Positions 11,163 through 60,855 of a stretch of DNA of 64,000 bases are shown piece by piece. The translations under genes and the position numbers were made by a program. Each line of letters starts with the position of its first letter. Positions within the stretch are counted from its first letter, which is position 1. Location of the stretch: sequence record NC_042013.1; one strand, given 5' to 3'. Below the pieces are notes generated by a model. The model was not told the DNA's origin, did not search any database, and saw nothing but the letters and a program-made list of their open reading frames with translations.

Positions 11163-11212
11163 TTGACATTATTCCAAATTCAGTTTAAGCTTTTTTCAAA
11201 TGAAAGGAGCTT
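11163..11212 (+). promoter_or_regulatory. sigma70 promoter overlapping an SD-sequestering hairpin
   Basis: TTGACA-17-TAAGCT; 11187-11197 pairs with 11202-11212 (GAAAGGAGCTT), two G-U pairs. Confidence 0.7.
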
Positions 11213-11217
11213 TACGA

Positions 11218-11718
11218 ATGGTAACAAAATTTTCTGGAAAAATTTCTGGTCACTTGTTTGAAAAGTATAACGGCGACACTGTTCGTATTGAATCTTGGTA
11301 TTCGCGATTTACCAAAGTTCGCCGTGCCAAATTGTTGTTCCTTTCTGGTTGTCAGGGACACCGTTGTGCGATTTGTTCTGTAAAGACGTGGCATCCATCA
11401 TTTGGCGAACGTGGCCCGCATAAGCGTCGTGCTACCCTTGAACATGTTATTGCACAAGCAAATGGTGGTGGAGAACATCTAAGCAATCTTCTTATGACTT
11501 GTTTGGATTGCAATTCCCGCCGAGGTGATGGTGATATTTTTCTGTACGAATCTGTACTTAGATTTCTACCCCGCGAGAAGACTCGTTCTCCTGAACAAAT
11601 TGCAAAGAAACAAAATCGAAATGATCTGTTTATTTTGAACACTGCATATATGTGCGCGACGAATAAAAATATTTCGGTTATGATCGATTATTTTATTGAC
11701 CGGTTACGCACAGTTTGA
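11218..11718 (+). CDS. HNH endonuclease
   Basis: CAIC...TLEHVIAQANGG...NLLMTCLDCNSRRG. Confidence 0.85.
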   Translation: MVTKFSGKISGHLFEKYNGDTVRIESWYSRFTKVRRAKLLFLSGCQGHRCAICSVKTWHPSFGERGPHKRRATLEHVIAQANGGGEHLSNLLMTCLDCNSRRGDGDIFLYESVLRFLPREKTRSPEQIAKKQNRNDLFILNTAYMCATNKNISVMIDYFIDRLRTV

Positions 11719-11780
11719 TATAAAGGTTTTGTTAGCCGGGAATTGGAACAAACAATTCCTTAATAAAACTCTAATCCAAA

Positions 11781-11969
11781 ATGGATTTTTACATGACTGA
11801 AGAAAAGAAAGTTTCCATCAATCTCTGGTATGACGCATATAGCAAGCGTACGTCCGAAGGTTCCCTCAGTTCAATTTCGGTTTTTTATGACCGTTTTGAA
11901 AAGACCCCCCTTGAGGAAATTGATGAAGATCGGGACCGTCTCCTGCATCTTGTCAAGATTGGTGTATAA
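11781..11969 (+). CDS. hypothetical protein
   Basis: 62-aa ORF followed by terminator. Confidence 0.5.
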   Translation: MDFYMTEEKKVSINLWYDAYSKRTSEGSLSSISVFYDRFEKTPLEEIDEDRDRLLHLVKIGV

Positions 11970-11970
11970 T

Positions 11971-11998
11971 AAAAAGGGCGCTTAAAGCGCCCTTTTTT
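11971..11998. terminator. bidirectional intrinsic terminator
   Basis: AAAAAGGGCGC-TTAAA-GCGCCCTTTTTT between convergent genes. Confidence 0.85.
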
Positions 11999-12396
11999 CA
12001 TGGATGAGTTTTATATGGTAACTGGAAGTGTGGTCCATCCTTAAATGTCTTCCAATCTCCACCCCATTCAATAGGGACGTGAAGTTCTTTTGCTGCCTGC
12101 TTCATAGCATCTGAAATCATTTTGTAATATTTCATATCCCAACTAACAGATGTTCCAATATACGCGACAACGTCAACGGCTTTAGAGAAGCCATCTTTTC
12201 CCGGTATATGACGTGAATTCAAGGTGGTTGTTGCACCTTCAGCCAATAGTTTCTTCTGTTCGGTTAACGTTCTCACGCCGCACGTAATACCGAAATCGAC
12301 CTCAGTGATTTGAATAGCTCTTTTAACCACTTTTACTAAATCAGGATGAACACCTGAAAGACGGTCAAGGCTTCGTTTGCTTAGATTGTATCCCAT
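11998..12396 (-). CDS. endolysin, peptidase M15 (L-Ala-D-Glu peptidase, T5-like)
   Basis: SRH...AVD and DGPHFQL zinc motifs. Confidence 0.9.
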   Translation of the reverse strand: MGYNLSKRSLDRLSGVHPDLVKVVKRAIQITEVDFGITCGVRTLTEQKKLLAEGATTTLNSRHIPGKDGFSKAVDVVAYIGTSVSWDMKYYKMISDAMKQAAKELHVPIEWGGDWKTFKDGPHFQLPYKTHP

Positions 12397-12399
12397 GAG

Positions 12400-12436
12400 A
12401 AATACCTCCGAAAAAGTTAATCTTCGAAGGTATTTA
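12400..12436 (-). promoter_or_regulatory. late promoter embedded in SD-occluding hairpin of the endolysin
   Basis: TAAATA at 12431-12436; 13-bp stem 12400-12412/12423-12435 covers GGAGG. Confidence 0.8.
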
Positions 12437-12459
12437 TTGGATATTTATATATTTTTGAT

Positions 12460-12786
12460 TTAGGCCAGAATGTCCTTTGCCATAACGAACTGTGCCGTCA
12501 CAATGTCGTCTTCGTCATCAAACACCATATTAACAACATAGTGCTTGTCAAGAATGAGACCCTCATCCTTAACGTCCTTGAACGAAATCTGTTCACCCTC
12601 ATTAACTGGCGGAACGAACATAGAACGCAGAGCAACGCGGACCAGCTTATAATTAACAATTTCACGGTCCTTGAGGAGTTTAACATATTCCTTTCGAAGG
12701 AAAATATTTTCTGCAAGATCAACACCGCGATGCTTTTCGTCAGTAGTAAACCAACGGTCAAACGGGATACGAAGGGCATTTTCCAT
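12460..12786 (-). CDS. hypothetical protein
   Basis: SD AAGGAGAG. Confidence 0.65.
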   Translation of the reverse strand: MENALRIPFDRWFTTDEKHRGVDLAENIFLRKEYVKLLKDREIVNYKLVRVALRSMFVPPVNEGEQISFKDVKDEGLILDKHYVVNMVFDDEDDIVTAQFVMAKDILA

Positions 12787-12826
12787 AATATTCTCTCCTT
12801 TTCAATTTCAACAATGCAACTTAACT

Positions 12827-13405
12827 TTAGTTTAGTTCGATGTCAATATATTCTAGTTCATTCAGGCAAATAAATCTGGTTCCATTGATGATGTAATCAA
12901 ACGACTTATGATAATGACCAAAGAACCAAACTTTAGGCTGATGCTCTTCAAAAAGCGCCTGTAACGTTTGCTGCGTGCGCGTGTGGCGATGATCGAAGTA
13001 CCCAAGCAAATACGCCTGCGCTTCAATAGGAGCATCGTGTGTGAACATATATGACGGCTTGGTATCGATATATTTTCCACCAATGTCATACAATTCAATG
13101 TTGGAGAGTTCTTCATCCTCCCACCAATCAACGTCCTTAGTTCTCATATGAATATCGGTTGAACGTGCGCCGCCAATAAAGAACATACCATTCTCAAAAT
13201 GACCATCTGGAATCCAGTTTGGATGTTCTTTGCACTTTGCTGGATCATCGTGATTGCCGCGAATAAATCGATCTTTTTTGTCCATTGGGGGGATATCGCC
13301 AAACCCTACGCCAAAATCACCAACTTGAATTGTTGGATGATTTACGTTGATAACTTCTCGATATTTTTCGTCTTTGCCATGACGATCACCAATTACCCGT
13401 AGCAT
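12827..13405 (-). CDS. calcineurin-like metallophosphoesterase
   Basis: GDRHG, VGDFG, RGNHD, THDAP, FGHYH. Confidence 0.9.
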   Translation of the reverse strand: MLRVIGDRHGKDEKYREVINVNHPTIQVGDFGVGFGDIPPMDKKDRFIRGNHDDPAKCKEHPNWIPDGHFENGMFFIGGARSTDIHMRTKDVDWWEDEELSNIELYDIGGKYIDTKPSYMFTHDAPIEAQAYLLGYFDHRHTRTQQTLQALFEEHQPKVWFFGHYHKSFDYIINGTRFICLNELEYIDIELN

Positions 13406-13536
13406 AATCAAACTCCATTTGAATTAATCATTCTGGTAGTTTATTTGTATTTACAAAAATGTCAACAGATAAATACCGTTACCTTGAACTAAACCCTCAA
13501 GATAATTTCAACATCCAATTAAGTTAGGATAACACT

Positions 13537-14271
13537 ATGACTACTATCTCACGCTACGACTGTCTCTTGACGACTATAAATTACGGCAAATCACCAACGG
13601 TTGATGATTTAATTACCGATTCTGAAAAAATTTATCAATATCTTAATCAGTTAGGCGAAACTCGCTCCATTAGAGATTTTTATCAATCTCTGCCCTCTAT
13701 TACCCATTATAAATTTCAAGAAGAAACCCTTACGCAGATAGATGGTGACTATCATAAAAATTATCTAATCACAGGACGCCAAGTTGGATCGTCTACTATC
13801 GGTGCAATATTTGCATTGCATCGCGCCGTTAACAAAGGTGATAACGTTTATATCGTATGCGCAAATGCCGCAGCTTGTAGTAACTTGGAAAGCTTGGTGA
13901 GTAATTTATATTCTCACATTTCAGAAAGTTACAACGGACATTCTATTAATCATTATAAGGGAGGCGGAAACATACATTTTGTTAGTTCGTCACATAGTAT
14001 ACCAAATGGTTCGGTGATTATTATAAACGATCTTACAAATGTGAGATATGCTGATTTTTCGGCAATGTCTGATTCAATCAATAAGTCTAAGAAATTTCTT
14101 GCTTATGGATGCTTGTCAAAGGATGATAACAACCCAATCAATCAACGTTTAACGTGCGGCGAAAAGGACACCTTTGATAAAATCCTACCTTCTCACTTAA
14201 GAGTTGATACCTCCAAGATCAGAAATACGGTTGATCCTGAAACTTTCAAAAGAGAATACTGTGAATTTTAA
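13537..14271 (+). CDS. degenerate terminase-large-subunit ATPase paralogue (no nuclease domain)
   Basis: RQVGSSTIGAIFALH vs T4 gp17 RQLGKTTVVAIFLAH; YKFQ Q-motif; ends TFKREYCEF. Confidence 0.7.
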   Translation: MTTISRYDCLLTTINYGKSPTVDDLITDSEKIYQYLNQLGETRSIRDFYQSLPSITHYKFQEETLTQIDGDYHKNYLITGRQVGSSTIGAIFALHRAVNKGDNVYIVCANAAACSNLESLVSNLYSHISESYNGHSINHYKGGGNIHFVSSSHSIPNGSVIIINDLTNVRYADFSAMSDSINKSKKFLAYGCLSKDDNNPINQRLTCGEKDTFDKILPSHLRVDTSKIRNTVDPETFKREYCEF

Positions 14272-14277
14272 AAATAA

Positions 14278-14299
14278 AAAGCCCCTTTTTAGGGGCTTT
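14278..14299. terminator. bidirectional terminator
   Basis: AAAGCCCCT-TTTT-AGGGGCTTT. Confidence 0.8.
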
Positions 14300-14693
14300 G
14301 TTTTGTCTTATTATGGATATTTTTCCAGTTCAAAATAACATCTTTGTATACCGCCGAATGAGAAAATGTCCATTCGTACATATCGTCTTGTTTTTCAAAG
14401 CCAGTCTCGTATCGAAGGCGCATAATGGTATATTGTTTTGCTTGTGCTTCCAGCCAAGCCGTAAATGAATCATAATCAGTTACGTCACGAGAAATTTTAT
14501 ATGAATCAGTTGGTAATTCGCCATTTAGCAATTCCGCAACAGTGTACATTCCACGTGCAATCAATGCCTCATTAATATCAATCTCAGATGCCTCGGTAAA
14601 AACTTTTTCAGCATCAGTTACGTTTGGATCAGTTGTACCATCTACATAGACCCATGCACCATCATTTTTATATCGCCATCCAACGTGAATCAT
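14289..14693 (-). CDS. hypothetical protein
   Basis: SD GAGGA. Confidence 0.65.
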   Translation of the reverse strand: MIHVGWRYKNDGAWVYVDGTTDPNVTDAEKVFTEASEIDINEALIARGMYTVAELLNGELPTDSYKISRDVTDYDSFTAWLEAQAKQYTIMRLRYETGFEKQDDMYEWTFSHSAVYKDVILNWKNIHNKTKQSP

Positions 14694-14702
14694 TTTAAAT
14701 CC

Positions 14703-15335
14703 TCAGCAACTTACAGTGCGCTTTTCAAAATCTTCTTGCGCGAATTTTTTGGCTTGTTCGTAAGATGTATAATATTCTTGAAAATAGATAGATTGACTAT
14801 CCTCAAGTTGTAAAATAACATCAAATTTGTTCTTACTCAAATGACGTACAACATACGTCATAAAAGAATTCGGGCGCGCTCGAATATCATGACCGGGTTC
14901 ACCACCATCGCTGTCCCATACCAATTCTTTTGATAGTGACTTGATAATTTCGTCCTTAATAATCACGAACTCAGCAATCGTTTCAGCATTGCGAACTCGC
15001 TCGATGATGTTTTCGTCTGGATTATATCTCTTTATGAATTTTTTTGCTTTAATATCATAAAACTCACCGTTCAACATTTTGAAAATGTAACCTTTACGAA
15101 TATCAATATAGCCGTCTATACCAGAAACAATAAGATCATCGTCTTCATTAATAGAAATTACGATATAATACTTATCATCGATGACCATAGCATTTTCATA
15201 AGGGGCAACCTCAATATACCCGAGAATAATATCCTCATTTGGGACGTTCGTAAAAAACAAATCCCATTCCCTTTTAGAATATCGAATACCGGCTGCAAGT
15301 TTCGAAGATTCATCAAATTCACGAATTAATGTCAT
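14703..15335 (-). CDS. hypothetical protein (paralogue of 15335..15667 plus extra C-term)
   Basis: GY(I/V)EVAPYE shared. Confidence 0.7.
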   Translation of the reverse strand: MTLIREFDESSKLAAGIRYSKREWDLFFTNVPNEDIILGYIEVAPYENAMVIDDKYYIVISINEDDDLIVSGIDGYIDIRKGYIFKMLNGEFYDIKAKKFIKRYNPDENIIERVRNAETIAEFVIIKDEIIKSLSKELVWDSDGGEPGHDIRARPNSFMTYVVRHLSKNKFDVILQLEDSQSIYFQEYYTSYEQAKKFAQEDFEKRTVSC

Positions 15336-15667: not shown

Positions 15668-15687
15668 TTCATTTTGCCTTTTAATGA

Positions 15688-16385: not shown

Positions 16386-16396
16386 TATATAACCTT

Positions 16397-17953: not shown

Positions 17954-17987
17954 TTACTCCACTTGAAATAACTATTGTATCACGCGA

Positions 17988-18104
17988 TCATTTCTTTTTC
18001 AATGGCCGTATTTTACGAGAAAGCCAGAATGCAATAGAAATGGCGACAGGCGCTAAAAACAGCGGTATTAACACGGTAGCCATCGTATACAATTCTTCTA
18101 ACAT
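17988..18104 (-). CDS. small single-TM protein (38 aa)
   Basis: MLEELYTMATVLIPLFLAPVAISIAFWLSRKIRPLKKK. Confidence 0.45.
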   Translation of the reverse strand: MLEELYTMATVLIPLFLAPVAISIAFWLSRKIRPLKKK

Positions 18105-18106
18105 AA

Positions 18107-18415
18107 TTAGTCCGTTTCTACTGGATTAAACCACGGGCGCGTAATATCACGTTCCGCTTGTACCGTTGTTAGCCCCTTAGCAATAAGAATGCCTTGGATG
18201 AACCCAACCCATCGCGAAAATTTATCCACGGAAAATCCAGTTCCCGTATAAGGAACAATCTTTTTTTCTAATTCTTTACACATCCACAACAGATGATTCA
18301 AACAAGTAGGATCACCATTTTCAATTACGGTATTGTTTACCGGCTTTGCATTTTTAGACTCCAAAAGTTCAACGTATCTTTTTACTGCTTTTAGGGTTCC
18401 TAATTCGATTGACAT
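18107..18415 (-). CDS. hypothetical phage protein
   Basis: KFSRWVGFIQG...ERDITRP. Confidence 0.7.
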   Translation of the reverse strand: MSIELGTLKAVKRYVELLESKNAKPVNNTVIENGDPTCLNHLLWMCKELEKKIVPYTGTGFSVDKFSRWVGFIQGILIAKGLTTVQAERDITRPWFNPVETD

Positions 18416-18507
18416 TGTTTTACCTTTATGATATTTCATTGTAATTAACCAAGTGTTGATTTTATCAAATTACTGGTTATATTTTCAATTTAAAAAAAGG
18501 TAACCGC

Positions 18508-18873: not shown

Positions 18874-18884
18874 ATGAGTTTTAC

Positions 18885-19381: not shown

Positions 19382-19405
19382 AATAGCCTCGTTTGATTAC
19401 AAGGC

Positions 19406-19411
19406 TATTTA
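19406..19411 (-). promoter_or_regulatory. late promoter core TAAATA
   Basis: 25 nt upstream of RNase H start. Confidence 0.45.
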
Positions 19412-20426: not shown

Positions 20427-20502
20427 TGGAGGCGCGGGTCAGGGTCGAACTGACATAAATCTCCTTTGCAGGGAGCTACCTAACCATTCGGTGCACCGCG
20501 CC
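20427..20502 (-). tRNA. tRNA-Cys (GCA)
   Basis: GGCGCGG/CCGCGCC acceptor, loop CT-GCA-AA, U73, encoded CCA. Confidence 0.95.
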
Positions 20503-22331: not shown

Positions 22332-22376
22332 TGCTCGTCCCCATTGAAATTAAATGGATCATAGCATTTAATCGTA

Positions 22377-26496: not shown

Positions 26497-26753
26497 CCAA
26501 GATAATCCATGACAATCTGACGGTCCTCATCGGTAACTACCAGATGTTTATCATCAAACGATGTTGGCTTGTAATCTACCTCGCCACTAAGAACAATCTC
26601 ACGAAGACGTTCTTTGTTTACATTAAAGAAATCATCCGATTCAATCTGTTCTTTCATAATAGCGTCATTTGCCATAACGTGGTGCATATGAAGAAAAGTC
26701 ATAACGATCTCCTTTAATTGTTTCGATGAAATGGTTATATCCCATCGAAACAA
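26490..26753 (-). CDS. hypothetical protein
   Basis: 87-aa ORF. Confidence 0.55.
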   Translation of the reverse strand: MFRWDITISSKQLKEIVMTFLHMHHVMANDAIMKEQIESDDFFNVNKERLREIVLSGEVDYKPTSFDDKHLVVTDEDRQIVMDYLGC

Positions 26754-26766
26754 TTAAGTCAAGAGT

Positions 26767-28437: not shown

Positions 28438-28645
28438 TAGCCTCTTCAGTTGCCTTCTGATTCAGCCAATTACGGGCCTCAAGCTTACCAAAAAACCAAG
28501 GCTGTTGGGAAACCATCGCGTTAGCATTACGCCATTGATATTTGTTATTGAGGGGATGGTTAGTCCTGCAAGAATGAAGAGCATTGAGTGTTTCAGCAGT
28601 ATGAATAAGCTGACAAATTTGATCAAGGCGTTCGTTATCAGTCAT
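28424..28645 (-). CDS. hypothetical protein
   Basis: SD AAGGAG, own promoter. Confidence 0.65.
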   Translation of the reverse strand: MTDNERLDQICQLIHTAETLNALHSCRTNHPLNNKYQWRNANAMVSQQPWFFGKLEARNWLNQKATEEANANG

Positions 28646-28706
28646 ATGCTAATCTCCTTTGATTAATTGATTATCTGGAGATTAGCATATCTTATAATAA
28701 TGTCAA
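28644..28706 (-). promoter_or_regulatory. sigma70 promoter whose -10 lies in a 14-bp anti-SD/anti-AUG stem
   Basis: TTGACA-16-TAATCT; 28644-28657 pairs with 28677-28690. Confidence 0.75.
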
Positions 28707-29702: not shown

Positions 29703-29732
29703 AAAAAATACAAGGGCGATTAAGCCCTTGTA
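29703..29732 (-). terminator. intrinsic terminator
   Basis: TACAAGGGC/GCCCTTGTA plus U6 on minus strand. Confidence 0.75.
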
Positions 29733-31098: not shown

Positions 31099-31162
31099 TC
31101 GCCGTCTCCTTAAAAGTATCTTAAAATAAAAAGGCCCGTCTATGTAACGGGCCTTGGTTGCT

Positions 31163-31705: not shown

Positions 31706-31757
31706 TTTTTAGTCCTTTCATTAAGTTTCGATACGTTTTTTGTATAAAAAATTGATA

Positions 31758-32903
31758 TCACTTTATAATTCTAATGTCAACCTTGCAGAAAAATATCAAC
31801 AAAGAAATACTTAGAATTACGCTTAGGATAAATCCAGATACAATAAGCCAAGTTGGAACCGGAATAGCATTTTTAAGATATTCAAATTCTTTCATAGACC
31901 TACGTTCAAACGAATTCATGCCAATTGTTTCTACATTTTTGATCAATGTCGAATATTCAATAGGCTTACCCATTCCACCAATAATGGAGTCGCGAAGTTC
32001 AATATCAAACAAGCTTTTTTTACTCCAAGAAAAAACGTTTGCCCATTTGATGTTATTATTATCAAGGCCAATGATTGCAACCGCATCATTTTTCTTGAAA
32101 CCATACCACTTCTTACGAATAGCATAGGCAATATTGTCGCCATATTGGTTAGCATCAACCAATACAAGAACAAAATTCATTTGTCTTTCTGGACCAAGCT
32201 TTTTGAGAACAACAGAAATGTCATTATTAAGTGTTTCTGGATACGTGACGTTACCAATGGGGACAACACGATCAACTTTGATCTTATCATAAATTTTAAT
32301 AGGGTATGAGGGAATAACGTTAGAATACTGTTCTTCAACAACCCCATCCTCATGATAAAGATTTTCAGATGCGGCACGCACCCAATTGCTATAAGGTTGC
32401 ATACTTGACGCCGGATCGCCAACCTTCTTTTCCGTGTATTTTGGAGGTTCATTAACCCCCTGACGATCAACACGTTTGATTTCAAAATCATATTTCACGT
32501 TAGTCCAAACGAAATAGCGACGTTCCCAATCGAAAACATAATTATACTCTGTCGTATAGATGGGAGTGCACGTGGTATTACCTTTATCATCGGTTGAACA
32601 CATTTCACCGGACTTTACGGTACGTGTACGATGTTCAGTGCAAAAATCATCTTGATAGCTTTGCCATCCGATAGGACATCCTCTGGTGATTGCTTGTTTT
32701 CGAACAATCTCACCGTTCCACAATTCATAATCATCTGCACTGGAATATCGTCCAGCATACCATACACCGGATACGATGAAGGCCGTTCCTACAAAAAGAA
32801 GAACCCCCTCGGTAATCGATACTGAATGGGAAAGCATTGTGACCGCAAAAATAGCAACAGTTAGCGGTACAAGAAAGATTAACAGAAGGGTAATGTCCAC
32901 CAC
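31758..32903 (-). CDS. membrane protein, partner of LemA-like (TPM-like periplasmic region)
   Basis: 2 N-term TM, Cys-containing periplasmic region, C-term TM; GTG start after AAGGAG. Confidence 0.6.
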   Translation of the reverse strand: MVDITLLLIFLVPLTVAIFAVTMLSHSVSITEGVLLFVGTAFIVSGVWYAGRYSSADDYELWNGEIVRKQAITRGCPIGWQSYQDDFCTEHRTRTVKSGEMCSTDDKGNTTCTPIYTTEYNYVFDWERRYFVWTNVKYDFEIKRVDRQGVNEPPKYTEKKVGDPASSMQPYSNWVRAASENLYHEDGVVEEQYSNVIPSYPIKIYDKIKVDRVVPIGNVTYPETLNNDISVVLKKLGPERQMNFVLVLVDANQYGDNIAYAIRKKWYGFKKNDAVAIIGLDNNNIKWANVFSWSKKSLFDIELRDSIIGGMGKPIEYSTLIKNVETIGMNSFERRSMKEFEYLKNAIPVPTWLIVSGFILSVILSISLLIFFCKVDIRIIK

Positions 32904-32957
32904 GATCTCCTTAATTAGAATAATTATCGTGATGGATATCACACCTCATAAAATAAA

Positions 32958-34479: not shown

Positions 34480-34535
34480 TGGGTTAATCCTTATTAATTT
34501 AACCCATCATATCACGCACGTTATTTCATTTTCAA
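34480..34535 (-). promoter_or_regulatory. promoter adjoining an RBS-blocking hairpin
   Basis: TTGAAA-18-TATGAT, then 8-bp stem TGGGTTAA/TTAACCCA with SD in loop, directly before ATG. Confidence 0.55.
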
Positions 34536-35116
34536 TTTTTAATTATAAAAAGCTTTGTATGTGCAGCATCTGCTTTATTACGACTCCATCCCCTCTTTTC
34601 TTCTATCCAATCGAAAAGATTTCCGCCATCAAAAGTTTCAATATTACCACCCTCATAATATTGAATGGTTTTGCCCATGCTATTAGCCTTGTCCATTAGA
34701 CGATACCACATTGTTCTACCTTTTTCAGATTGAACGATATCTGAAATAACACCGGTATGTGAAGGTAATATATAATCAAAGAACGTCTTAAAAACTATAT
34801 TGTTAGGCGTATTTCCTTTGCTACGCCATATCATTGCTTGAGTAACATAATCACCAGACAATTTAAAATGTGTAGGATATTCCAATTCACATAAGAAGGA
34901 AGTAAGGCCGGTTTCCTTGTCGATCACCATATAATTTTCATTAGAATTAAGGATGAAAAGATATTTGTCAGTTTCTTCCAAAACATCATAACCGGCATTC
35001 ATAACAGATTTTGTAAAAGATTTATTAGATTCCAGTCTGTCAAGATGTGTAGAAAAATCAGAAATGAGACGCGGCATCTCTGTTAAAGTATGTTCTAAAA
35101 GATCGATTAGTCTCAT
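34532..35116 (-). CDS. hypothetical late protein
   Basis: TAAATA at 35138-35143; N-term MRLIDLLE..L.EMP. Confidence 0.65.
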   Translation of the reverse strand: MRLIDLLEHTLTEMPRLISDFSTHLDRLESNKSFTKSVMNAGYDVLEETDKYLFILNSNENYMVIDKETGLTSFLCELEYPTHFKLSGDYVTQAMIWRSKGNTPNNIVFKTFFDYILPSHTGVISDIVQSEKGRTMWYRLMDKANSMGKTIQYYEGGNIETFDGGNLFDWIEEKRGWSRNKADAAHTKLFIIKN

Positions 35117-35140
35117 GGTAAATATCTCCTATGGAAATAT

Positions 35141-35677
35141 TTACCATTTTTTATTAACATCATATACACCAGAAACCATATCGTCTCTAACCCGTGTAAT
35201 GACCTCGCCAAGCCAGTTAGTGCCTTTCCAGTTAGATGGATTATTTAGAACATTTTTAGGAGTCTTCATACCGAGTTTAATCCCCCAAATATCGTCATAG
35301 GGAGAAGCCTCAACAAACAAATCAGCCGTTTCATTCATTATTGTATTCTTCATATAATCGTTATGTAAAAATTTATGATAGATACCAATATACATTACAT
35401 CACGAGATACTGCATCCCATTCTACACGATTGAAATTTTTAACCTCACGTCCAAACTGTTTCTGTTCAGATGGTTCTCTGGTAGTCATTATGTTATTAAG
35501 CTGAACAAAATCGTTAAACAACAATGCCTTATGAAACATCATATACTGTTCACTGGTATCAAATTCTAAAACATCATTAGATACAGTAAAGCCGTTATTA
35601 AATTTTATGATTGGGGCAGAATATTTCATTCCGAACCAGTTACTGTAAACACCACCATAAAAAAATTTGTATTTCAT
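35141..35677 (-). CDS. NADAR (YbiA-like) hydrolase
   Basis: SEQYMMFHKA, GREVKNF, VEASPYDDIWG, GTNWLG. Confidence 0.9.
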   Translation of the reverse strand: MKYKFFYGGVYSNWFGMKYSAPIIKFNNGFTVSNDVLEFDTSEQYMMFHKALLFNDFVQLNNIMTTREPSEQKQFGREVKNFNRVEWDAVSRDVMYIGIYHKFLHNDYMKNTIMNETADLFVEASPYDDIWGIKLGMKTPKNVLNNPSNWKGTNWLGEVITRVRDDMVSGVYDVNKKW

Positions 35678-36340: not shown

Positions 36341-36367
36341 TAATGGCGAGAATTAATCTCGCCATTA
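36341..36367 (-). terminator. hairpin terminator
   Basis: 11-bp IR TAATGGCGAGA/TCTCGCCATTA. Confidence 0.7.
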
Positions 36368-37204: not shown

Positions 37205-37232
37205 AAAAAAAGGTGGGAACACCCACCTTTTT
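37205..37232 (-). terminator. clpP terminator
   Basis: AAGGTGGG/CCCACCTT with A/T tracts on both sides. Confidence 0.8.
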
Positions 37233-39068: not shown

Positions 39069-39120
39069 TAACTCCTTTGTTATCGTATGATTAGTAACAA
39101 AGGAGTTATGGATTTGTCAA
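39069..39120 (-). promoter_or_regulatory. promoter containing a 14-bp anti-SD arm
   Basis: TTGACA 39115-39120; 39069-39082 pairs perfectly with 39095-39108, covering AAGGAG. Confidence 0.75.
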
Positions 39121-39534: not shown

Positions 39535-39601
39535 GATAATCTCCTTTACCGTTTCGATGATATAGTTATACATCATCAAAAAATAAAGTCAACACTTTAT
39601 T

Positions 39602-39931: not shown

Positions 39932-39936
39932 GAAAA

Positions 39937-39991
39937 AATCTCCTTAAACGTTTCGATTTAAGGAGATTATCACAATCAGAAATAATGTCAA
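39937..39991 (-). promoter_or_regulatory. sigma70 promoter whose -10 lies in a 12-bp anti-SD stem
   Basis: TTGACA-16-TAATCT; 39937-39948 pairs with 39957-39968. Confidence 0.75.
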
Positions 39992-44426: not shown

Positions 44427-44748
44427 ACGGAATATCCGCGTCGTGGATTTCGATTTTAGTAATCCGATCCACGATTGGAAGGTATTCCTCATTCAATCGA
44501 ATCTGAAATACAGGTTTTGTATCGATCAGATATACCTCAAACTTACCGTGAGGGAAATCTGGAATCATATAATCTTCAGAATGAAGACCTAGCTTGGTGG
44601 TTAGAAGTTCCTCGAATTCATCCTTGAAATCAAGATTTGCGATAACGTCATTTGTCATCTTGAAAATGATACGAGCTTTATGCTCCGAATAGTAGGTTTC
44701 CAAATCCCACCCATTGTGATCCTGCTTATTAAGATTTACGATTTCCAT
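44410..44748 (-). CDS. hypothetical protein
   Basis: SD AAGGAG. Confidence 0.65.
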   Translation of the reverse strand: MEIVNLNKQDHNGWDLETYYSEHKARIIFKMTNDVIANLDFKDEFEELLTTKLGLHSEDYMIPDFPHGKFEVYLIDTKPVFQIRLNEEYLPIVDRITKIEIHDADIPFKELA

Positions 44749-44807
44749 ATGGTTACACTCCTTTCAATTAGAATGTAACCATATATCATCTTTGGAAATT
44801 TTGTCAA
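44747..44807 (-). promoter_or_regulatory. promoter overlapping an 11-bp start-codon-blocking stem
   Basis: TTGACA 44802-44807; 44747-44757 pairs with 44774-44784. Confidence 0.7.
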
Positions 44808-48090: not shown

Positions 48091-48924
48091 TTATAGGTGC
48101 CAATCATCCATTGCACGTGCATGTGACGGGCGATGCCCATCTCTCATCAACAATTCGTCTCGAATAAGCTGATTTTTCTTTTCCTCGTGCAAAATTCGAA
48201 GAAATGAGTTTTTCATCGTTGACGTATAATAAGCAAACGGGTTTTGACTTTTGCTTTCTTCGAATTTCAAACCAGCGTGTGAAAGTTGAATAAGAGCTTG
48301 TGCTTGCATTTCTTCAAGGTAGCTATAACCTCTCCAGTTTGGTTTCTGTCCATACTTGTCAACAAGTTTAAGATACATCGCACCCAAACGATCAGTTGTA
48401 CGCCCGTGTGTTACACAAAATTCACCATTCTCTAATGCATTTCGCCAATGCGATCTACCGACCTCACGCAGCACCAGTTCATTTGCATCAAAATCTTCGG
48501 TGTTTTCAATGTCAGTTTCGATAACATAATGCTTGTATGGAGCGAAATTTAGTGTATGATGGAAATCCTTTTCCTTTTTGGGATTGCCACGAAGTTCGTG
48601 TTCCTCGAGGCGAGGAATATGTTCATATGTCATAATACGAACGACCATACCATTAATCGGTATCGTTTTAGGATCGGTTGCCTCAAAGTCTGGAATGACT
48701 TTAACTTTGTGGGTTTTCTTATATTCCTCGCGTATTTTACGATCAAGACGCATAGCCTTGGTTACGCGAGTTGCATTGATGAGTTCTGTGGTTAATAACG
48801 ACCTGTCTGCAATGATTATATCATAATTTGCATATTGCGGTTCGGTGTAGTATGAATACGTGTTCTTGCTTAGATGAATCTCTTTGAGCAATTCACGGTT
48901 GGATAGAAAATTTACTTTTGCCAT
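48091..48924 (-). CDS. gp55: late-transcription sigma factor
   Basis: NWRGYSY.EEM, KF...KSQNPFAYYT...F.R.L.EEKK; upstream of 47-46 as in T4. Confidence 0.9.
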   Translation of the reverse strand: MAKVNFLSNRELLKEIHLSKNTYSYYTEPQYANYDIIIADRSLLTTELINATRVTKAMRLDRKIREEYKKTHKVKVIPDFEATDPKTIPINGMVVRIMTYEHIPRLEEHELRGNPKKEKDFHHTLNFAPYKHYVIETDIENTEDFDANELVLREVGRSHWRNALENGEFCVTHGRTTDRLGAMYLKLVDKYGQKPNWRGYSYLEEMQAQALIQLSHAGLKFEESKSQNPFAYYTSTMKNSFLRILHEEKKNQLIRDELLMRDGHRPSHARAMDDWHL

Positions 48925-49031: not shown

Positions 49032-49586
49032 ATGGATATCGTTATAGGTTCTGGACGTTTTAATCCTCCTACTGATGGTCATTACAAATTGTTCAAAATG
49101 ATTGAAAACACAGCTATATCTGACGGTGTGCGCGGTGAAGTATTTATAGTTGACGGTATAGGAAGTTCACAAGATGTTGGTAAAAATCCATTATCAATAT
49201 CTGAAAGGCAAAAAATCATTAAGAGATGGGTTCCATCTTTGCGGGTTGATTTTGTAAATTCTGCATATGATTTATTCGATGTTTTAGACGTTCAAAATAA
49301 GAATGTTACTAAATGGTTTATCGGAAAAGATCGTGAAAAAAGTTACAAAAGTCTTTTAAAGCAAATGAATTCCATGCATATAGAATTGATGATTTTGGAA
49401 AGAACCGATGAAGATGTTTCAGCAACCAAAGCTCGTCAATTCGCAATTGAAGGTGACATTGAACAGTTTTGTAAAATGATGCCTACTATAAATACCCTCG
49501 AAGATAACTTGTCAGTTATTAACCTTATTCGGGGTAAAAACAACTTATGTCATATGACCTTAAAACATTTACCATTGTTGAAGTAG
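49032..49586 (+). CDS. cytidylyltransferase-like (HIGH) nucleotidyltransferase
   Basis: GRFNPPTDGH, KNPLS, VSATKAR. Confidence 0.85.
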   Translation: MDIVIGSGRFNPPTDGHYKLFKMIENTAISDGVRGEVFIVDGIGSSQDVGKNPLSISERQKIIKRWVPSLRVDFVNSAYDLFDVLDVQNKNVTKWFIGKDREKSYKSLLKQMNSMHIELMILERTDEDVSATKARQFAIEGDIEQFCKMMPTINTLEDNLSVINLIRGKNNLCHMTLKHLPLLK

Positions 49587-55921: not shown

Positions 55922-55931
55922 GGATTATGAC

Positions 55932-56746: not shown

Positions 56747-56769
56747 CATAGCTATGTCAAATTTTAATC

Positions 56770-56798
56770 TTGACGTTGCTGTTTCAACCTGATACATT
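56770..56798 (+). promoter_or_regulatory. sigma70 promoter of candidate sRNA
   Basis: TTGACG-17-TACATT. Confidence 0.6.
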
Positions 56799-56885
56799 GG
56801 TGTCATCGATACTGAATACAACCGACTGCTTGATAGTTCGTGTGCTTAACCGGTTTGCTTCAACCGCGTATTCAGTATCGACACC
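56799..56885 (+). ncRNA. structured sRNA candidate with repeated UGCUU loops
   Basis: Perfect 14-bp closing helix 56806-56819/56868-56881, two inner hairpins. Confidence 0.65.
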
Positions 56886-56890
56886 CCCTC

Positions 56891-56942
56891 TTGACTCCAT
56901 ATACCAACCGAGATAATATCCCATATGAAGGAGATACATATG
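56891..56942 (+). promoter_or_regulatory. promoter plus start-codon hairpin
   Basis: TTGACT-17-TAATAT; CATATG-AAGGAGATA-CATATG. Confidence 0.6.
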
Positions 56943-57224
56943 TGGTATTTTAAACATGACGCAATTCCGAATACATTTATTGATCGTTATTTTTCAATAA
57001 GGGTTGATTCAATGTGGTGGTCTTATGAACACAACAAATTCGTAGAAACTATTGGGGACGTTGGTAAAAAAGGTGCTGCTTCATCAAAAAGCATTGGATC
57101 ATTCAAAGCCTTCAAGAGATTTTTGAGAAAGCATTCGTATCTTAAAGGAAAAACGGTATTGTTAGAATCGAGGTGGTCACATAATAACGTAGTTGCAAAA
57201 TGGATTGATCATGAAAATAGGTGA
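56940..57224 (+). CDS. hypothetical protein
   Basis: SD AAGGAG. Confidence 0.65.
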   Translation: MWYFKHDAIPNTFIDRYFSIRVDSMWWSYEHNKFVETIGDVGKKGAASSKSIGSFKAFKRFLRKHSYLKGKTVLLESRWSHNNVVAKWIDHENR

Positions 57225-57498
57225 AATGTATAAACACAGAAATGCTGTTATTCAAATTCACAGCATTCAAGAGGAAACTGTCAGCATTAAATTATTCTCC
57301 AATGAAATATATCTGGATACCGTAGTAAAGTCTGAGTTACTAGAAGACATAAATGATGGCTTTTATAAGCCTATGTCATCAACCGAAATCAAGTATTTCA
57401 TTGATGATAAAGTCGATTTTTACGAAAATGCTATTACCAAAAATTTCAAAAATTATAATAGCATCATAGAGACACTGAAATTATCAAGAAACCAGTGA
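57211..57498 (+). CDS. hypothetical protein
   Basis: Operon packing. Confidence 0.55.
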   Translation: MKIGEMYKHRNAVIQIHSIQEETVSIKLFSNEIYLDTVVKSELLEDINDGFYKPMSSTEIKYFIDDKVDFYENAITKNFKNYNSIIETLKLSRNQ

Positions 57499-58191
57499 TT
57501 TCATCAAATAATTATCCAACTCTTGATGTGTTGGGAATACAACCCCGTACATTCTTTGTAAGTTATAAATTTTATCGTTATTTATTACAGAGATAGGTTC
57601 AACTCGTAAAATTTTAAAGCTAGATCCTATCTGACCAACAGCATTAACATTCGGCCCTTTACACAAGTCCCACCAAGAACCCTGTGAATAAGTTATCACA
57701 TCATTTCCAGATGGAATTCCGTCGAGGATTTGAATTTTGTAAGGTTCATCTACAGTTGTGAAATATTCACGTAATTCGTCTCGATTGTTAACAAAACGTT
57801 TGAATTTAGCGTTACGTTCTACCAATTCTAACATCTTAGAGGTTACTTCATTTATACATATAAAGCCGTCATATTCAAAGTCATAGAAAAATTCAACATT
57901 TTCAGTGCAGCAATTTGCAGTTTTTAGGTCTGGATACAATAGCATAACGGCTTCAGACATAACTCGTGATGTTGAATTTCGCAAAGCTCTCGCAGCTATC
58001 GGATCATGTTTTGAGATATAGCGTATATGGGAATCTGATGTTATGGGGGTTGATAAATCAGACAATACGCCATTGATTTCGATGAGAATTATGTTCTCGT
58101 CAAAAATGTTCAAATGTTTAAGTATATCCTCGCCCGATGAATTGCGTGGATATGTAGTAATTGTACCGTTATCCAATGTCAACATTATCAT
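57484..58191 (-). CDS. stand-alone ThrRS N-terminal (TGS + editing) domain, catalytic His substituted
   Basis: FFYDF, YKIQILD, DLCKGP, LQRMYG align to ThrRS N1/N2; ends at TGA TAA where the catalytic core would begin. Confidence 0.85.
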   Translation of the reverse strand: MIMLTLDNGTITTYPRNSSGEDILKHLNIFDENIILIEINGVLSDLSTPITSDSHIRYISKHDPIAARALRNSTSRVMSEAVMLLYPDLKTANCCTENVEFFYDFEYDGFICINEVTSKMLELVERNAKFKRFVNNRDELREYFTTVDEPYKIQILDGIPSGNDVITYSQGSWWDLCKGPNVNAVGQIGSSFKILRVEPISVINNDKIYNLQRMYGVVFPTHQELDNYLMKSLVS

Positions 58192-58249
58192 CTTTTGTAC
58201 TCTTTGAAAAATAATACCTTATACTCTAATTTATCTCTTTAAAAGATAA

Positions 58250-58275
58250 AGGCCGGTTGCCCGGCCTCTTTTTTT
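58250..58275. terminator. intrinsic terminator
   Basis: AGGCCGG-TTGC-CCGGCCT plus T tract. Confidence 0.75.
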
Positions 58276-59065
58276 ATTTTTTCCAATTCGGAGGTGGTGT
58301 ACAACCAGTTAACGGGAAAGGATTAGGAAGGTTCCGTGAAATAGTTGGTTTTTTATCAAAAACAATACCAAGCTTCTCAAGGTTCTTACGCGAATCGTAA
58401 AAGAGAACTAGTGTATCTTTCTTAGCGCCCTTGTCAAAAGTATTTGTAGAAAAGTCAGAAGAAACACTTTCCCCCCACGTAACGCCTAGTTCATTACCAC
58501 TTGCTTCATATTCTTGAGTATTGCTTGATAAACTAGAAGACGCATTACCAACCAGCATATTATTCTGACAAGTAGAATACCAAATGGGATTTGTCCAAGG
58601 CTCATTCGGATATGATCGTTTCCAAGGATACGGATCAGTTACTGGAGGGGTATTGATATAGATATAGCGATCTACATATTTTACCTTTTCTTCTTTTACC
58701 AATTCCTCAAAAACCATCGCGCCGATGACGCCTACGTTTTTAGATTCGGTTCCAGCATATGATTTATCAATAGAATCGAACTTAAAACGTGCAGACTCAC
58801 TGTTCGAAACAACCCAACCCGGCACCATATAAGAACTATGTGGTTCAACTATAAACCCAATAGAATCTGGCCCTGCTGGTTTTCCGTCTGTTACGGATAA
58901 CCCATCAACGCTAACTACGAACAAAGATCGTTTATTGCTCCAGTTATAAAGTTTGATAGAGAATTCCGAACCTGCTCGACCCTCGATATAGGTTGCTTCA
59001 TTTAGCTTATATTCGGGAATTTTTTTATTCCCTACAATAATCTCCATCGTATACTTACTTGCCAT
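58274..59065 (-). CDS. hypothetical Ig-like beta protein
   Basis: VVSVDGLSV..G, NVGVIGAMVFEE. Confidence 0.7.
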   Translation of the reverse strand: MASKYTMEIIVGNKKIPEYKLNEATYIEGRAGSEFSIKLYNWSNKRSLFVVSVDGLSVTDGKPAGPDSIGFIVEPHSSYMVPGWVVSNSESARFKFDSIDKSYAGTESKNVGVIGAMVFEELVKEEKVKYVDRYIYINTPPVTDPYPWKRSYPNEPWTNPIWYSTCQNNMLVGNASSSLSSNTQEYEASGNELGVTWGESVSSDFSTNTFDKGAKKDTLVLFYDSRKNLEKLGIVFDKKPTISRNLPNPFPLTGCTPPPNWKK

Positions 59066-59735
59066 TTTCGTCTCCTTCATCAAAGAATGACTTGACGGAG
59101 CCTACAACACCAGCACTACGTATAGAACGATATGACATAGTAGCACTTGATAGGGTTGACATCATATTATCCATATTAGACGTGCTATACGTCATAGTCT
59201 GGCCTTTAGAAAGACCGAGTGATTGCCCGACAGACCACGCGTCTTGGTTCGCGCCTAGATATACAAAAGTCCAGCCATCTGCCGTCTTTTTTGATATAAT
59301 GTCCTTGATGGATTGCTGATTGTATTCCTTTGACATATTATCATGGCCATCAGTAATGATAACAATCAACGGATTTAAAACACCAAGATTTTCAACTTTA
59401 GCAATAGTAGAACCGATTGAGTCATATAGATTAGTCATACCATCCGGTTTATAAGTTTCATTCGTAAGGTCGCTAACTGAATTTAAATCTTTGTTAACGA
59501 AAATATCACGAACGGCATTTACAGACGGGCTAATATAGCTCGACGCTGAAAAAGTCGTCAAACTTACATTACATTTACCCTCTTGTTTCTTCTGTGTTGA
59601 AATGAATTCGTTGAAGCTACTAATTGTAGCCGCTTTTGACGAACCCATTGAACCGGTTTCATCAAGAATGATATGAATATAGGTATCTGAAGAGATAGGC
59701 GTGCTTCCGCCAGAGATAGCAGTTACTTTGGTCAT
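59055..59735 (-). CDS. von Willebrand factor A domain protein
   Basis: MIDAS-like LDETGSM, LYDSIG, IITDG. Confidence 0.9.
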   Translation of the reverse strand: MTKVTAISGGSTPISSDTYIHIILDETGSMGSSKAATISSFNEFISTQKKQEGKCNVSLTTFSASSYISPSVNAVRDIFVNKDLNSVSDLTNETYKPDGMTNLYDSIGSTIAKVENLGVLNPLIVIITDGHDNMSKEYNQQSIKDIISKKTADGWTFVYLGANQDAWSVGQSLGLSKGQTMTYSTSNMDNMMSTLSSATMSYRSIRSAGVVGSVKSFFDEGDENGK

Positions 59736-59749
59736 TTGATTTATCCTTT

Positions 59750-59829
59750 GAAGGTCTTACCTGCCCGAAAACTATCAGGACTTATCTGCCTTCCGCTTGA
59801 ATAACACCATTGTCATTCAAAGCTATTTA
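59750..59829 (-). promoter_or_regulatory. late promoter and structured, pseudo-symmetric 5' leader of the vWA gene
   Basis: TAAATA 59824-59829; 9-bp hairpin; stem with twin GGCAG(A/G)TAAG loops. Confidence 0.55.
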
Positions 59830-59834
59830 TGCAG

Positions 59835-59868
59835 AAAAGGGACAGCCCATTTCTGAACTGTCCCTTTA
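59835..59868. terminator. hairpin terminator
   Basis: AAAGGGACAG/CTGTCCCTTT. Confidence 0.75.
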
Positions 59869-59890
59869 TATCATAGTTAATTAGTAAAAG

Positions 59891-60193
59891 TCAATGTTTT
59901 TGTTTATCACATTTAAAATCGTTGAAACCGAAACTTTTTGCCAATGAAAGAACGTCATCTACCTTGATATCAGCAACTTCGGAGGTATACGTACCTGCAA
60001 CAGCCTTACCAGCAGATTCGATTTCAGAAATAATTTCGATTGCTTCTGCTTCAGTCTTGCCGAAAATATTAATCAGAACCGCACCTACGAATTCGAGAGG
60101 TGTCTTCTGATCATCATGCAAAAGAACGTCATATAGTGACGGTTCTGCGATTTCAACACGCTCAAGAACCATAGTATCGTTATAGGCCGTCAT
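59891..60193 (-). CDS. clpS: ClpS adaptor homologue, altered N-degron pocket
   Basis: YDVLLHDDQKTPLEFV, GKAVAGTYTSEVA; SD AAGGA. Confidence 0.85.
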   Translation of the reverse strand: MTAYNDTMVLERVEIAEPSLYDVLLHDDQKTPLEFVGAVLINIFGKTEAEAIEIISEIESAGKAVAGTYTSEVADIKVDDVLSLAKSFGFNDFKCDKQKH

Positions 60194-60252
60194 TAAGTTT
60201 CCTTTCATACTGTTGAATTTCATAAATGTTATAAAGAGTATAACGATCAATG

Positions 60253-60801
60253 TCAATAGGTATTCCAATGATTATCACAACGAGCCTCATATTCTCTTGT
60301 TGTTCCCAATTCAACTGAGCCGCCTTCCTGTGACACTTTATAAGTTTTTGATGCAGGATGGCCGCATACTGTGCAATTAGCCTTTAATTTAAAATGATCA
60401 TTTGCCATAGAACTTAACGCGGAAACAACAGGGAAAGGGTTTCCTTGCCAATCCATGTCCAATCCAGCAACAACCACCTCTATTCCCTTTTCGAGCATAG
60501 ATTTGATCCACGCAATCACATCACCATTAAAATTTTCACCATAGAAAAATTGTACCTCATCGAAAAATACAATAGTATTCCCGGTATTAATTATCTCTAC
60601 TGGTTCTCTAATACTGGTAGCAGTAGTTTTCAAACCATCGTGACTTACTATTTCCGTTGTAGAATATCTATCATCAAATTCTATTCGAAATACGTGTACA
60701 TCACGAAATGTACCATTTTTTGCCCAAAGTATTCTTTTCAATAGTTCGGACGTTTTTGAAGAAAACATCGGGCCGCTTATTGTTGTTAATTTACCGTACA
60801 T
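60253..60801 (-). CDS. tk: thymidine kinase
   Basis: GPMFSSKT, FDEVQF, AGLDMD, CTVC, YEARC. Confidence 0.95.
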   Translation of the reverse strand: MYGKLTTISGPMFSSKTSELLKRILWAKNGTFRDVHVFRIEFDDRYSTTEIVSHDGLKTTATSIREPVEIINTGNTIVFFDEVQFFYGENFNGDVIAWIKSMLEKGIEVVVAGLDMDWQGNPFPVVSALSSMANDHFKLKANCTVCGHPASKTYKVSQEGGSVELGTTREYEARCDNHWNTY

Positions 60802-60808
60802 CTAAAAA

Positions 60809-60855
60809 TCTCCAATAAAAATTTAATTATAAATCATTGGAGACTGTATATTCAA
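60809..60855 (-). promoter_or_regulatory. tk promoter with anti-SD arm in the spacer
   Basis: TTGAAT-18-TATAAT; TCTCCAAT 60809-60816 / ATTGGAGA 60836-60843. Confidence 0.65.

Follow-up and report, generated by a model that had tools for sequence, protein, structure and literature searches.

The DNA analyzed here is the last 64 kb of Agrobacterium phage Atu_ph07 (record 426381-490380, 100% identity; hereafter the window, 64,000 nucleotides in all), and its subject is a set of hairpins that pair the Shine-Dalgarno (SD) sequence and/or the start codon of genes lying behind a co-directional neighbor. Atu_ph07, a T4-like jumbo myovirus of 490,380 bp (Polybotosvirus), infects A. tumefaciens C58. 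Jumbo phages carry hundreds of densely packed co-directional genes and few terminators, and how the level and timing of each gene are controlled in them is poorly understood. The Atu_ph07 genome paper makes no mention of promoters, terminators or hairpins, and promoters and hairpins are likewise absent from the content of the AP-J-162 paper. The window is AT-rich (37% GC) and, by the coordinates of the RefSeq table, holds 116 complete coding sequences, mostly on the minus strand. An earlier note on this DNA had named ten inverted repeats whose 3' arms would cover the SD and/or AUG of a gene and whose 5' arms would lie in the spacer or -10 element of that gene's own promoter, and had read them as translational insulators. 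About one window gene in eight carries a hairpin that hides its ribosome-binding site (RBS), and this feature is real and non-random.

Helices were located with a finder that accepts Watson-Crick and G-U pairs, at least 6 bp, loops of 3-30 nt and a 3' arm overlapping positions -16 to +3 around the start codon, and each locus was compared with 1000 dinucleotide shuffles of the 5' part of its leader, the SD and start codon being held fixed. Eight of the ten named repeats were recovered almost base for base, and seven of them are strong (11-16 bp, -10.5 to -19.6 kcal/mol, P<=0.006). Ahead of the HNH endonuclease gene gp622 (leader 11163-11212, plus strand), a predicted -35 TTGACA (11163-11168) and -10 TAAGCT (11186-11191) are accompanied by an 11-bp hairpin with a 4-nt loop at 11187-11212, which holds AGGAG in its 3' arm (-10.5 kcal/mol, P=0.006); from the predicted transcription start site (TSS) at -20, the gene's own transcript retains none of the 5' arm. 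The leader of the endolysin gene gp624 (12400-12449; this and the following loci are on the minus strand unless stated otherwise) contains a 15-bp hairpin with a 6-nt loop at 12400-12435 and CGGAGG in its 3' arm (-17.5 kcal/mol, P<0.001), has no TTGACA-type promoter and carries only T4-late-type TATAAATA motifs, a perfect copy at 12442-12449 and an imperfect AATAAATA at 12431-12438. The gp660 leader (28644-28706) combines a predicted -35 TTGACA (28701-28706) and -10 TAATCT (28679-28684) with a 14-bp hairpin, loop 19 nt, at 28644-28690 whose 3' arm includes both SD and AUG (-18.4 kcal/mol, P<0.001).

Before the AAA ATPase gene gp677 (leader 39069-39120, predicted -35 TTGACA at 39115-39120), the 5' arm of the hairpin at 39069-39108 occupies the promoter spacer (39095-39108) and its 3' arm (39069-39082) holds AAAGGAG (-15.5 kcal/mol, P<0.001). 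The gp679 leader (39937-39991) has predicted promoter elements TTGACA (39986-39991) and TAATCT (39964-39969) and a 13-bp hairpin at 39937-39968 with ATCGAAAC, the predicted TSS motif, in its loop and AAGGAGATT in its 3' arm, followed by TTTTTT (-13.9 kcal/mol, P<0.001). In the gp690 leader (44746-44807), a predicted TTGACA (44802-44807) precedes a -10 (44778-44785) that lies inside the 5' arm of a 16-bp hairpin, loop 8 nt, at 44746-44785, with SD and AUG in the 3' arm (-19.6 kcal/mol, P<0.001). The thymidine kinase (tk, gp709) spacer (60807-60887) contains a canonical terminator (60860-60887), then TTGAAT (60850-60855), an 18-nt spacer and TATAAT (60826-60831), and a 12-bp SD hairpin at 60807-60845 that is followed by TTTTT (-12.4 kcal/mol, P=0.001). 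The remaining three repeats are weaker. That of the DNA polymerase exonuclease subunit gene gp671 (leader 34480-34535, predicted promoter TTGAAA 34530-34535 and TATGAT 34506-34511) is a modest 8-bp helix at 34480-34506, placed between SD and AUG (-7.2 kcal/mol, P=0.007), and two are at chance level: a 7-bp helix at 56922-56942 (gp703, plus strand; -3.1 kcal/mol, P=0.56) and a 6-bp helix at 22340-22360 (gp645; -2.5 kcal/mol, P=0.34), both in leaders with promoter-like elements (TTGACT-N17-TAATAT and TTGACA-N16-TATGAT, respectively).

At least eight hairpin genes had been overlooked (gp615, gp617, gp620, gp638, gp644, gp655, gp669 and gp672), and the seven strong named loci are thus joined by at least eight others with helices of -9.5 kcal/mol or lower that pair the SD and/or start codon. 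The gp615 leader (7756-7825, promoter TTGACT-N16-TATGAT) pairs its 5' arm (7789-7800) with the AUG and first codons (7756-7767), at -9.5 kcal/mol for the 12-bp core and -21.1 kcal/mol for the extended 18-bp helix. The gp617 leader (9424-9474, promoter TTGATA-N18-TATTCT) contains a 12-bp hairpin at 9424-9460 whose 3' arm reaches the SD (-13.8 kcal/mol), and the gp638 leader (19382-19409) an 11-bp hairpin whose 3' arm, ACGAGGCTATT, adjoins the AUG (-13.7 kcal/mol); the latter is without a sigma70-like promoter, and its 5' arm begins with a TAAATA-like sequence. In the gp655 leader (26714-26762, predicted promoter TTGACT 26757-26762 and TATAAC 26734-26739), a 19-bp hairpin at 26714-26757 ends 1 nt before GGAG (-20.4 kcal/mol) and is an extended form of the cassette hairpin described below. 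The gp669 leader (32896-32936) has an 11-bp hairpin over the annotated GTG start (-13.7 kcal/mol), and the gp672 leader a 15-bp hairpin at 35115-35147, loop 3 nt, over SD and AUG (-17.0 kcal/mol).

Counted across the window at a threshold of -10 kcal/mol with the 3' arm overlapping -16 to +3, 15 of 116 genes bear such a hairpin, compared with 0.57 when the 5' parts of leaders are shuffled (maximum 3), 1.1 when 5' parts are exchanged among genes and 3.5 at random window positions. The helices are 15- to 25-fold enriched over the shuffle and swap controls, and leaders with a promoter also show an excess (12 hairpins, as against 1.8 after their 5' halves are swapped). The observation reported in the earlier note is, as a whole, largely real and statistically solid. 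We extended the sample to record positions 1-149,600, giving 303 genes in 214 kb of the 490-kb genome; the window proved unusually rich, since hairpins at the same threshold occur at 9 of the 187 genes elsewhere (P=0.015).

These numbers bear on the simplest alternative, that the repeats are chance palindromes or DNA-level operators that overlap promoters. Two of the ten named loci are indeed at chance level and the inverted repeats do overlap promoter elements, but the enrichment speaks against chance, and no common operator emerges, as the arm sequences differ at every locus outside the SD/anti-SD core. The 3' arm is, moreover, tied to the position of SD and AUG, and 28 of 318 pairs are G-U, a count from a biased sample that fits RNA and not DNA. 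We consider chance or operators a very improbable account of the set, and rejected the operator or DNA-palindrome reading because the arms are locus-specific.

The promoters paired with these hairpins are predictions, albeit credible ones. In sense orientation, 22 window genes have TTGAC[AT] at an upstream distance of 49-69 nt (mode 55-62), with TAnnnT 16-18 nt further on; the -35 motif is ~10-fold enriched at -75 to -45, and an exact -35 with a -10 in the expected slot precedes 65 of the 303 genes, against ~7 from background frequency. Many of these elements belong to a conserved promoter-leader cassette of ~70 nt, aaaataatNtgTTGAC(A/T)TTATTTTT-N7-8-GTATAAC-T-N4-CATCGAAAC-N5-7-AGGAGA-N6-8-ATG, which is present in at least 20 copies in the 214 kb, mainly ahead of small hypothetical genes. 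Window copies lie at 6323-6395 (plus strand) and at 26703-26762, 31706-31780, 39535-39592 and 39932-39991 (minus strand), with many more in record positions 1-149,600, and CATCGAAAC is conserved at the expected start-site position, 7 nt past the -10. The cassette resembles the PeSLs of T4-type phages, repeated units of a sigma70 promoter and a stem-loop, and apparently has not been described for Atu_ph07. The claim that the 5' arm sits inside the promoter spacer or the -10 stands, for predicted promoters, at eight of the ten named loci, the endolysin leader lacking a promoter of this type.

A second, smaller group of promoters is of the T4 late type. Ten of the 20 copies of TATAAATA precede a start codon in sense orientation at a distance of no more than 75 nt, where ~1 would be expected, and the genes concerned include tail-tube, endolysin and virion-protein genes; the window copies are at 12442-12449, 49487-49494 and 62749-62756. 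A gp55-like late sigma factor, gp694, is encoded at 48091-48924, and its presence fits the idea, likely from the positions of the motif, that TATAAATA functions as a late promoter in Atu_ph07. Outside the window, the tail-tube gene gp127 is predicted from its sequence to be a clean fit to the T4 late paradigm.

The geometry of hairpin and promoter is uniform. Twelve genes have both a called promoter and a hairpin, and in each of them a transcript begun at the predicted TSS would keep 0-3 nt of the 5' arm. Folding predicts a probability of 0.01-0.19 that SD and AUG are unpaired in read-through RNA and of 0.25-0.72 in RNA from the predicted TSS; for gp690 the two values are 0.01 and 0.72. The predicted leaders have a median length of 25 nt. 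The SD core lies inside the 3' arm in ~19 of 24 start-proximal hairpins, and the matching anti-SD sequence is overrepresented: CTCC occurs at -50 to -18 in 13 of 115 co-directional leaders, 3.5-fold above the 3.2% expected by composition (P=9e-5), whereas the GGAG control is found in 1 of 115, and CTCC itself in 2 of 48 divergent leaders and in 6 of 138 leaders with upstream coding sequence. SD hairpins account for 8 of the 13 CTCC-bearing leaders. In gp679 and in gp052 (record 1-149,600), which are cassette variants, the normally variable spacer bases read TCTCCTT and are complementary to the gene's own AAGGAGA.

The hairpins are also restricted to one kind of junction. They occur at 25 of 115 genes with a co-directional upstream neighbor and at none of 48 divergent genes (P=8e-5), and each kb of a strand holds on average 3.8 hairpins in co-directional spacers (sense), 6.8 in convergent and 0.34 in divergent ones, compared with 0.49 in coding sequence. 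The 55 sense-strand hairpins in co-directional spacers sort into three classes. Class A comprises canonical terminators that begin 4-30 nt past the stop codon and keep a distance of over 30 nt to the next start; their stems are GC-rich and 9-14 bp long, their loops measure 4-5 nt, and they are flanked by A- and T-runs. Class B (n=24) has AT-rich 11-19-bp stems and longer loops (mean 11 nt), a 5' arm located in the promoter spacer or -10 and a 3' arm that overlaps the start or ends within 12 nt of it. In class C (at least five copies, TTTCGATGGTGTATAACTACATCATCGAAA) the conserved cassette itself takes the form of a hairpin, which has the -10 at its apex, ends 17-18 nt ahead of the start and leaves the SD unpaired; in the PeSL-like gp678 leader (39552-39581, TTTTGATGATGTATAACTATATCATCGAAA), for example, the 3' arm stops 17 nt ahead of the start codon. 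Sense folds are the more stable in 21 of 24 comparisons with the antisense strand, a biased count, since it was on the sense strand that these hairpins had been selected; the unbiased comparison, 55 sense and 40 antisense hairpins, is weak.

The SD hairpins of class B are a class distinct from the phage's canonical terminators. Class A terminators stand in the window at 29709-29732, 31131-31155, 36341-36367, 37207-37232, 58248-58269, 59836-59867, 60860-60887 and 62579-62602 (minus strand; GC-rich stems, tetra- or pentaloops); by their form they mark what we take as real transcription-unit ends, and their A-run and T-run flanks suggest bidirectional action. The tk spacer is the only one that carries both a class A and a class B hairpin, and tk is the only hairpin gene with an intervening canonical terminator. 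A terminator scan of 28-48 kb flagged class A but only one of six class B hairpins, that of gp679.

Three near-complete metagenomic relatives found through a protein database (L053-L055: ENA ERZ17807488, 497,883 bp; ERZ929151, 492,394 bp; Logan SRR10034633) are 96.6-97.5% identical to Atu_ph07 over 21 kb and syntenic, in reversed orientation, with window positions ~27,835-49,000. Among these three, variable columns make up 14.7% of third codon positions, 4.7% of spacers, 4.5% of loops and 2.5% of hairpin arms. The six class B hairpins in the 21-kb region have 2 variable positions among 166 in their arms, both uncompensated, and the arms of gp660 (in all three relatives) and gp677 are unchanged; the class C hairpin of gp678 has two uncompensated changes in L055. 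In these alignments the arm conservation shows purifying selection, including on spacer bases that a sigma70 promoter itself leaves unconstrained. At greater distance, the leaders of gp677 ATPase homologues (identity of 43% or less; IMG/VR and a phage collection) have no equivalent hairpin.

A single indel was seen across the three relatives in these 21 kb, and it is not flanked by cassettes. It adds to L055 an open reading frame at 17957-18151 (window ~31100-31130) that encodes 64 amino acids with a hydrophobic N-terminus; on one side of this insertion is the terminator that follows the gp668 homologue, on the other the SD of the gp667 homologue. Elsewhere in the window, ARAGORN reports two tRNAs, one labelled SeC, whose anticodon TCA would read UGA, and a tRNA-Cys, at 4333-4407 (plus strand) and 20427-20502 (minus strand), neither of which is in the feature table. 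TGA ends 118 of 303 genes examined, and a UGA-reading tRNA is therefore curious.

From the predicted promoters and the geometry, we infer that the class B elements are RBS-sequestering hairpins that insulate genes at co-directional junctions from upstream read-through, a reading to which we give slightly better than even chances. In RNA arriving from upstream, the anti-SD 5' arm, often containing CTCC, would pair with the SD and/or AUG and block binding of the 30S subunit, and the untranslated gene might then be open to Rho-type polarity and decay. For most hairpin genes a promoter of their own is predicted, with 55-62 nt between it and the start codon; generally it is the early-promoter cassette or a variant thereof, and for a few genes TATAAATA. 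The leader, at ~25 nt, is so short that the 5' arm comes to lie upstream of the TSS, within the promoter spacer or the -10, so that locally initiated mRNA would lack the arm and could be translated. About a third of the hairpins have a U-run and would probably also attenuate read-through transcription, in which case masking and attenuation would both insulate the gene from transcription upstream of it. What stands of the insulator idea in the earlier note is the predicted masking of SD and AUG, the predicted loss of the arm but for 0-3 nt in all 12 promoter cases, the co-directional restriction, the CTCC enrichment and the separateness from canonical terminators; the promoter coupling, the T-runs and the endolysin do not go with it.

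A number of observations weigh against this interpretation. The overlap of arm and promoter, which had been taken as design, is not borne out as such. With leaders of ~25 nt, any stem of 10 bp or more that closes on the SD must begin upstream of the TSS, and the overlap is a geometrical consequence of having both a hairpin and a nearby promoter; it is no evidence of design. Nor is a recognizable sigma70-like promoter associated with the hairpin: among genes with a spacer of at least 40 nt, and counting hairpins of -8 kcal/mol or lower, 12 of 69 leaders with a promoter (17%) and 13 of 94 without one (14%) have a hairpin, and for this reason we no longer put forward a coupled design on statistical grounds. 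A scan with a generic sigma70 consensus returned 81 sites, compared with 77.7 in shuffles, and is uninformative in AT-rich DNA, for which reason the positional enrichment and the conserved cassette were used in its place. Both arm changes among the relatives break the gp669 stem in L054, and no compensatory change is seen among the three, which at 96.6-97.5% identity are too close, and in their arms too nearly invariant, to give a covariation signal. Class C hairpins miss the SD yet are found in the same position, a sign that they may do something other than mask the SD. TTTT at -12 to -1 follows the stem in 8 of 24 hairpin genes but in only 10 of 127 others (P=0.002), and this makes a terminator or attenuator role a live alternative.

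On that alternative, the elements would be PeSL-type cassettes of terminator or attenuator and promoter, the stem stopping or destabilizing upstream transcripts or protecting their 3' ends, and SD masking would be a by-product, promoter and SD being overlapped only for lack of room in 55-65-nt spacers. Beyond the T-runs, it can draw on the PeSL precedent, one PeSL having been shown to be a terminator (PMC2839356, PMC4122927), on the five or more class C copies of the cassette whose hairpin covers the -10 and spares the SD, on the terminator-like score of gp679, on the confinement of hairpins to co-directional and convergent spacers, as is true of terminators, and on the independence of hairpin and promoter. 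About a third of class B do look like terminators whose 3' arm is the SD, namely gp679, tk and gp644 in the window and, outside it, gp139, gp150, the terminase gene gp110 and the exonuclease gene gp035 among others. However, the other two thirds lack a T-run, and the stems are AT-rich (arm GC 0.36, against 0.47), while a clearly different canonical terminator form exists elsewhere in the phage, side by side with the SD hairpin in the tk spacer. Room does not explain the position either, as in spacers of 82-92 nt class B hairpins are still over the SD or AUG, 48-65 nt from the stop codon, and in 22 of 31 short-spacer cases hairpins lie closer to the start than to the stop; the 3.5-fold excess of CTCC in 5' arms is a further point against this alternative. 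We regard termination as the primary role as unlikely, though well within consideration, and transcriptional attenuation and translational masking may act jointly.

For some strong hairpins (gp672, gp638 and gp701) a promoter is lacking altogether, so that these genes must have some other opening mechanism. The endolysin poses a similar difficulty: its perfect TATAAATA has a predicted TSS at about -40, at the hairpin base, and the RNA would keep the whole hairpin, a start inside the 5' arm being predicted from the imperfect AATAAATA only. Such cases fit a different account, in which the TSS lies upstream, all transcripts contain the hairpin and it tunes or couples expression irrespective of promoters, by setting a low translation rate, stabilizing the 5' end or making translation dependent on upstream ribosomes. 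The gp673/gp672 junction is the best candidate for coupling, as the spacer is 24 nt, the gp673 stop codon lies within the 5' arm and the layout, as far as the sequence tells, is the textbook one for translational coupling and not for promoter control. Around a third of all hairpins begin within 12 nt of the upstream stop codon, and 13 hairpin genes are without a recognizable promoter. Yet most 5' arms start 15-30 nt past the stop, out of reach of a terminating ribosome, and divergent genes, which should need tuning equally, have no hairpin (0/48). Furthermore, all 12 promoter cases have the conserved -10 and the start motif CATCGAAAC within the 5' arm or beyond it. As a general explanation, tuning or coupling seems to us distinctly improbable.

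If insulation from read-through is the function, then for about one gene in ten the decisive mRNA would be the short one from its own promoter, and read-through RNA in RNA-seq data would say little on protein output. This bears on the annotation of such phages, on the reading of phage transcriptomes and on the design of insulated expression cassettes, and it would widen the paradigm of T4 e, soc and 49 from a delay until late infection to expression from the gene's own early promoter only. What detracts from the value of the finding is that principle, cassette type and insulation concept have all appeared in print before and that T4 has the same frequency.

The closest of these precedents is T4 itself, in which e, soc, 49 and I-TevI, along with mobE of Aeh1 and segB, are known for RBS sequestration relieved by an internal late promoter, the first three being the cases that the earlier note had rightly cited (PMC3014915). 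There as here, a helix pairs the SD and/or AUG on transcripts derived from upstream, and a promoter in or just after the 5' arm opens the mRNA, as predicted in Atu_ph07; both phages are T4-like myoviruses, and the types of gene concerned overlap (endolysin, HNH endonuclease, nucleases). They differ in that the documented internal promoters of T4 are late (TATAAATA) or middle and delay expression, whereas those predicted in Atu_ph07 are mostly sigma70-like early-type cassettes, the effect of which would be to limit translation to the gene's own early transcript.

As a yardstick, the same pipeline was applied to T4 positions 1-50,000 (50 of 169 kb, 84 genes), where it recovers the known cases 49, soc and I-TevII, the last with TATAAATA inside the stem, and finds 5 hairpins at -10 kcal/mol or lower (6%) and 8 at -8 kcal/mol or lower (9.5%). 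The rate in Atu_ph07, 24 of 303 genes (7.9%), does not differ from 5 of 84 (P=0.65), nor does that of the window alone (13%, P=0.15). T4 modB (NC_000866 ~13131-13200, minus strand) has an early promoter, GTTTAC-N17-TATGAT, whose -10 lies within a 14-bp arm that pairs SD and AUG (-17.7 kcal/mol), a layout on which our literature search found no paper. The proposal that the arrangement had been generalized to sigma70 promoters in Atu_ph07 was thus overstated, since on the rate and on modB the sigma70-type layout is neither peculiar to this phage nor commoner in it. It is a tentative and on balance doubtful extension that T4-like phages, T4 with modB included, routinely build an anti-SD arm into the spacer or -10 of early sigma70-type cassettes, with ~10% of genes being translated only from their own promoter and kept silent on the long read-through RNAs that prevail in such compact genomes with few terminators; if so, there would be a general layer of translational insulation that gives each gene its own dose and is shut off together with the early promoters.

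The second precedent is that of the PeSLs of RB49/phi1, PST/T4 and nt-1/KVP40, in which the stem occupies the -35/-10 spacer or covers the -10 and does not include the SD (PMC2839356, PMC4122927). Atu_ph07 likewise has a conserved unit of ~70-100 nt that recurs in intergenic spacers, mostly before small unknown genes; in it a sigma70-like promoter with a stem-loop in its -35/-10 spacer or across its -10 is followed by SD and ATG. PeSLs are described as terminators; in Atu_ph07 a subset of the stems covers SD and AUG, most without a U-run, and gene shuffling mediated by PeSLs is not seen in the single indel among the Atu_ph07 relatives. The SD hairpins share with intrinsic terminators a stem-loop in a co-directional spacer and, in one third of cases, four or more T after it. 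They differ in being AT-rich and anchored at the start codon, intrinsic terminators being GC-rich with 4-5-nt loops and A- and T-runs just past the stop, and two thirds of SD hairpins do not have the GC-rich stem with an immediate U-run.

The third is the bacterial sigma54 promoter, which according to Levy et al. (2017) encodes CT-rich anti-SD motifs that silence translation of read-through RNA, such motifs being generally depleted upstream of RBSs (bioRxiv 10.1101/086108). The concept is that of the earlier note: a CT-rich anti-SD sequence sits in the promoter, ~25 nt or less from the SD, and the promoter's own RNA is translated, and in Atu_ph07 CTCC does occur in the promoter region near the SD. 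The sigma54 motifs are 3-5 nt long, whereas Atu_ph07 has 11-19-bp helices and sigma70-like phage promoters, the arm-overlapping ones being TTGAC[AT]-N16-18-TAnnnT or TATAAATA and not of the -24/-12 type, and its 3.5-fold CTCC enrichment is unlike the depletion reported with the sigma54 insulators. Judged by sequence, the Atu_ph07 elements combine T4 sequestration, PeSL and sigma54 insulator in PeSL-like early cassettes, together with a few late promoters, whose stem is extended over the SD, and they are a variant of tricks already known in phage T4 and no new principle.

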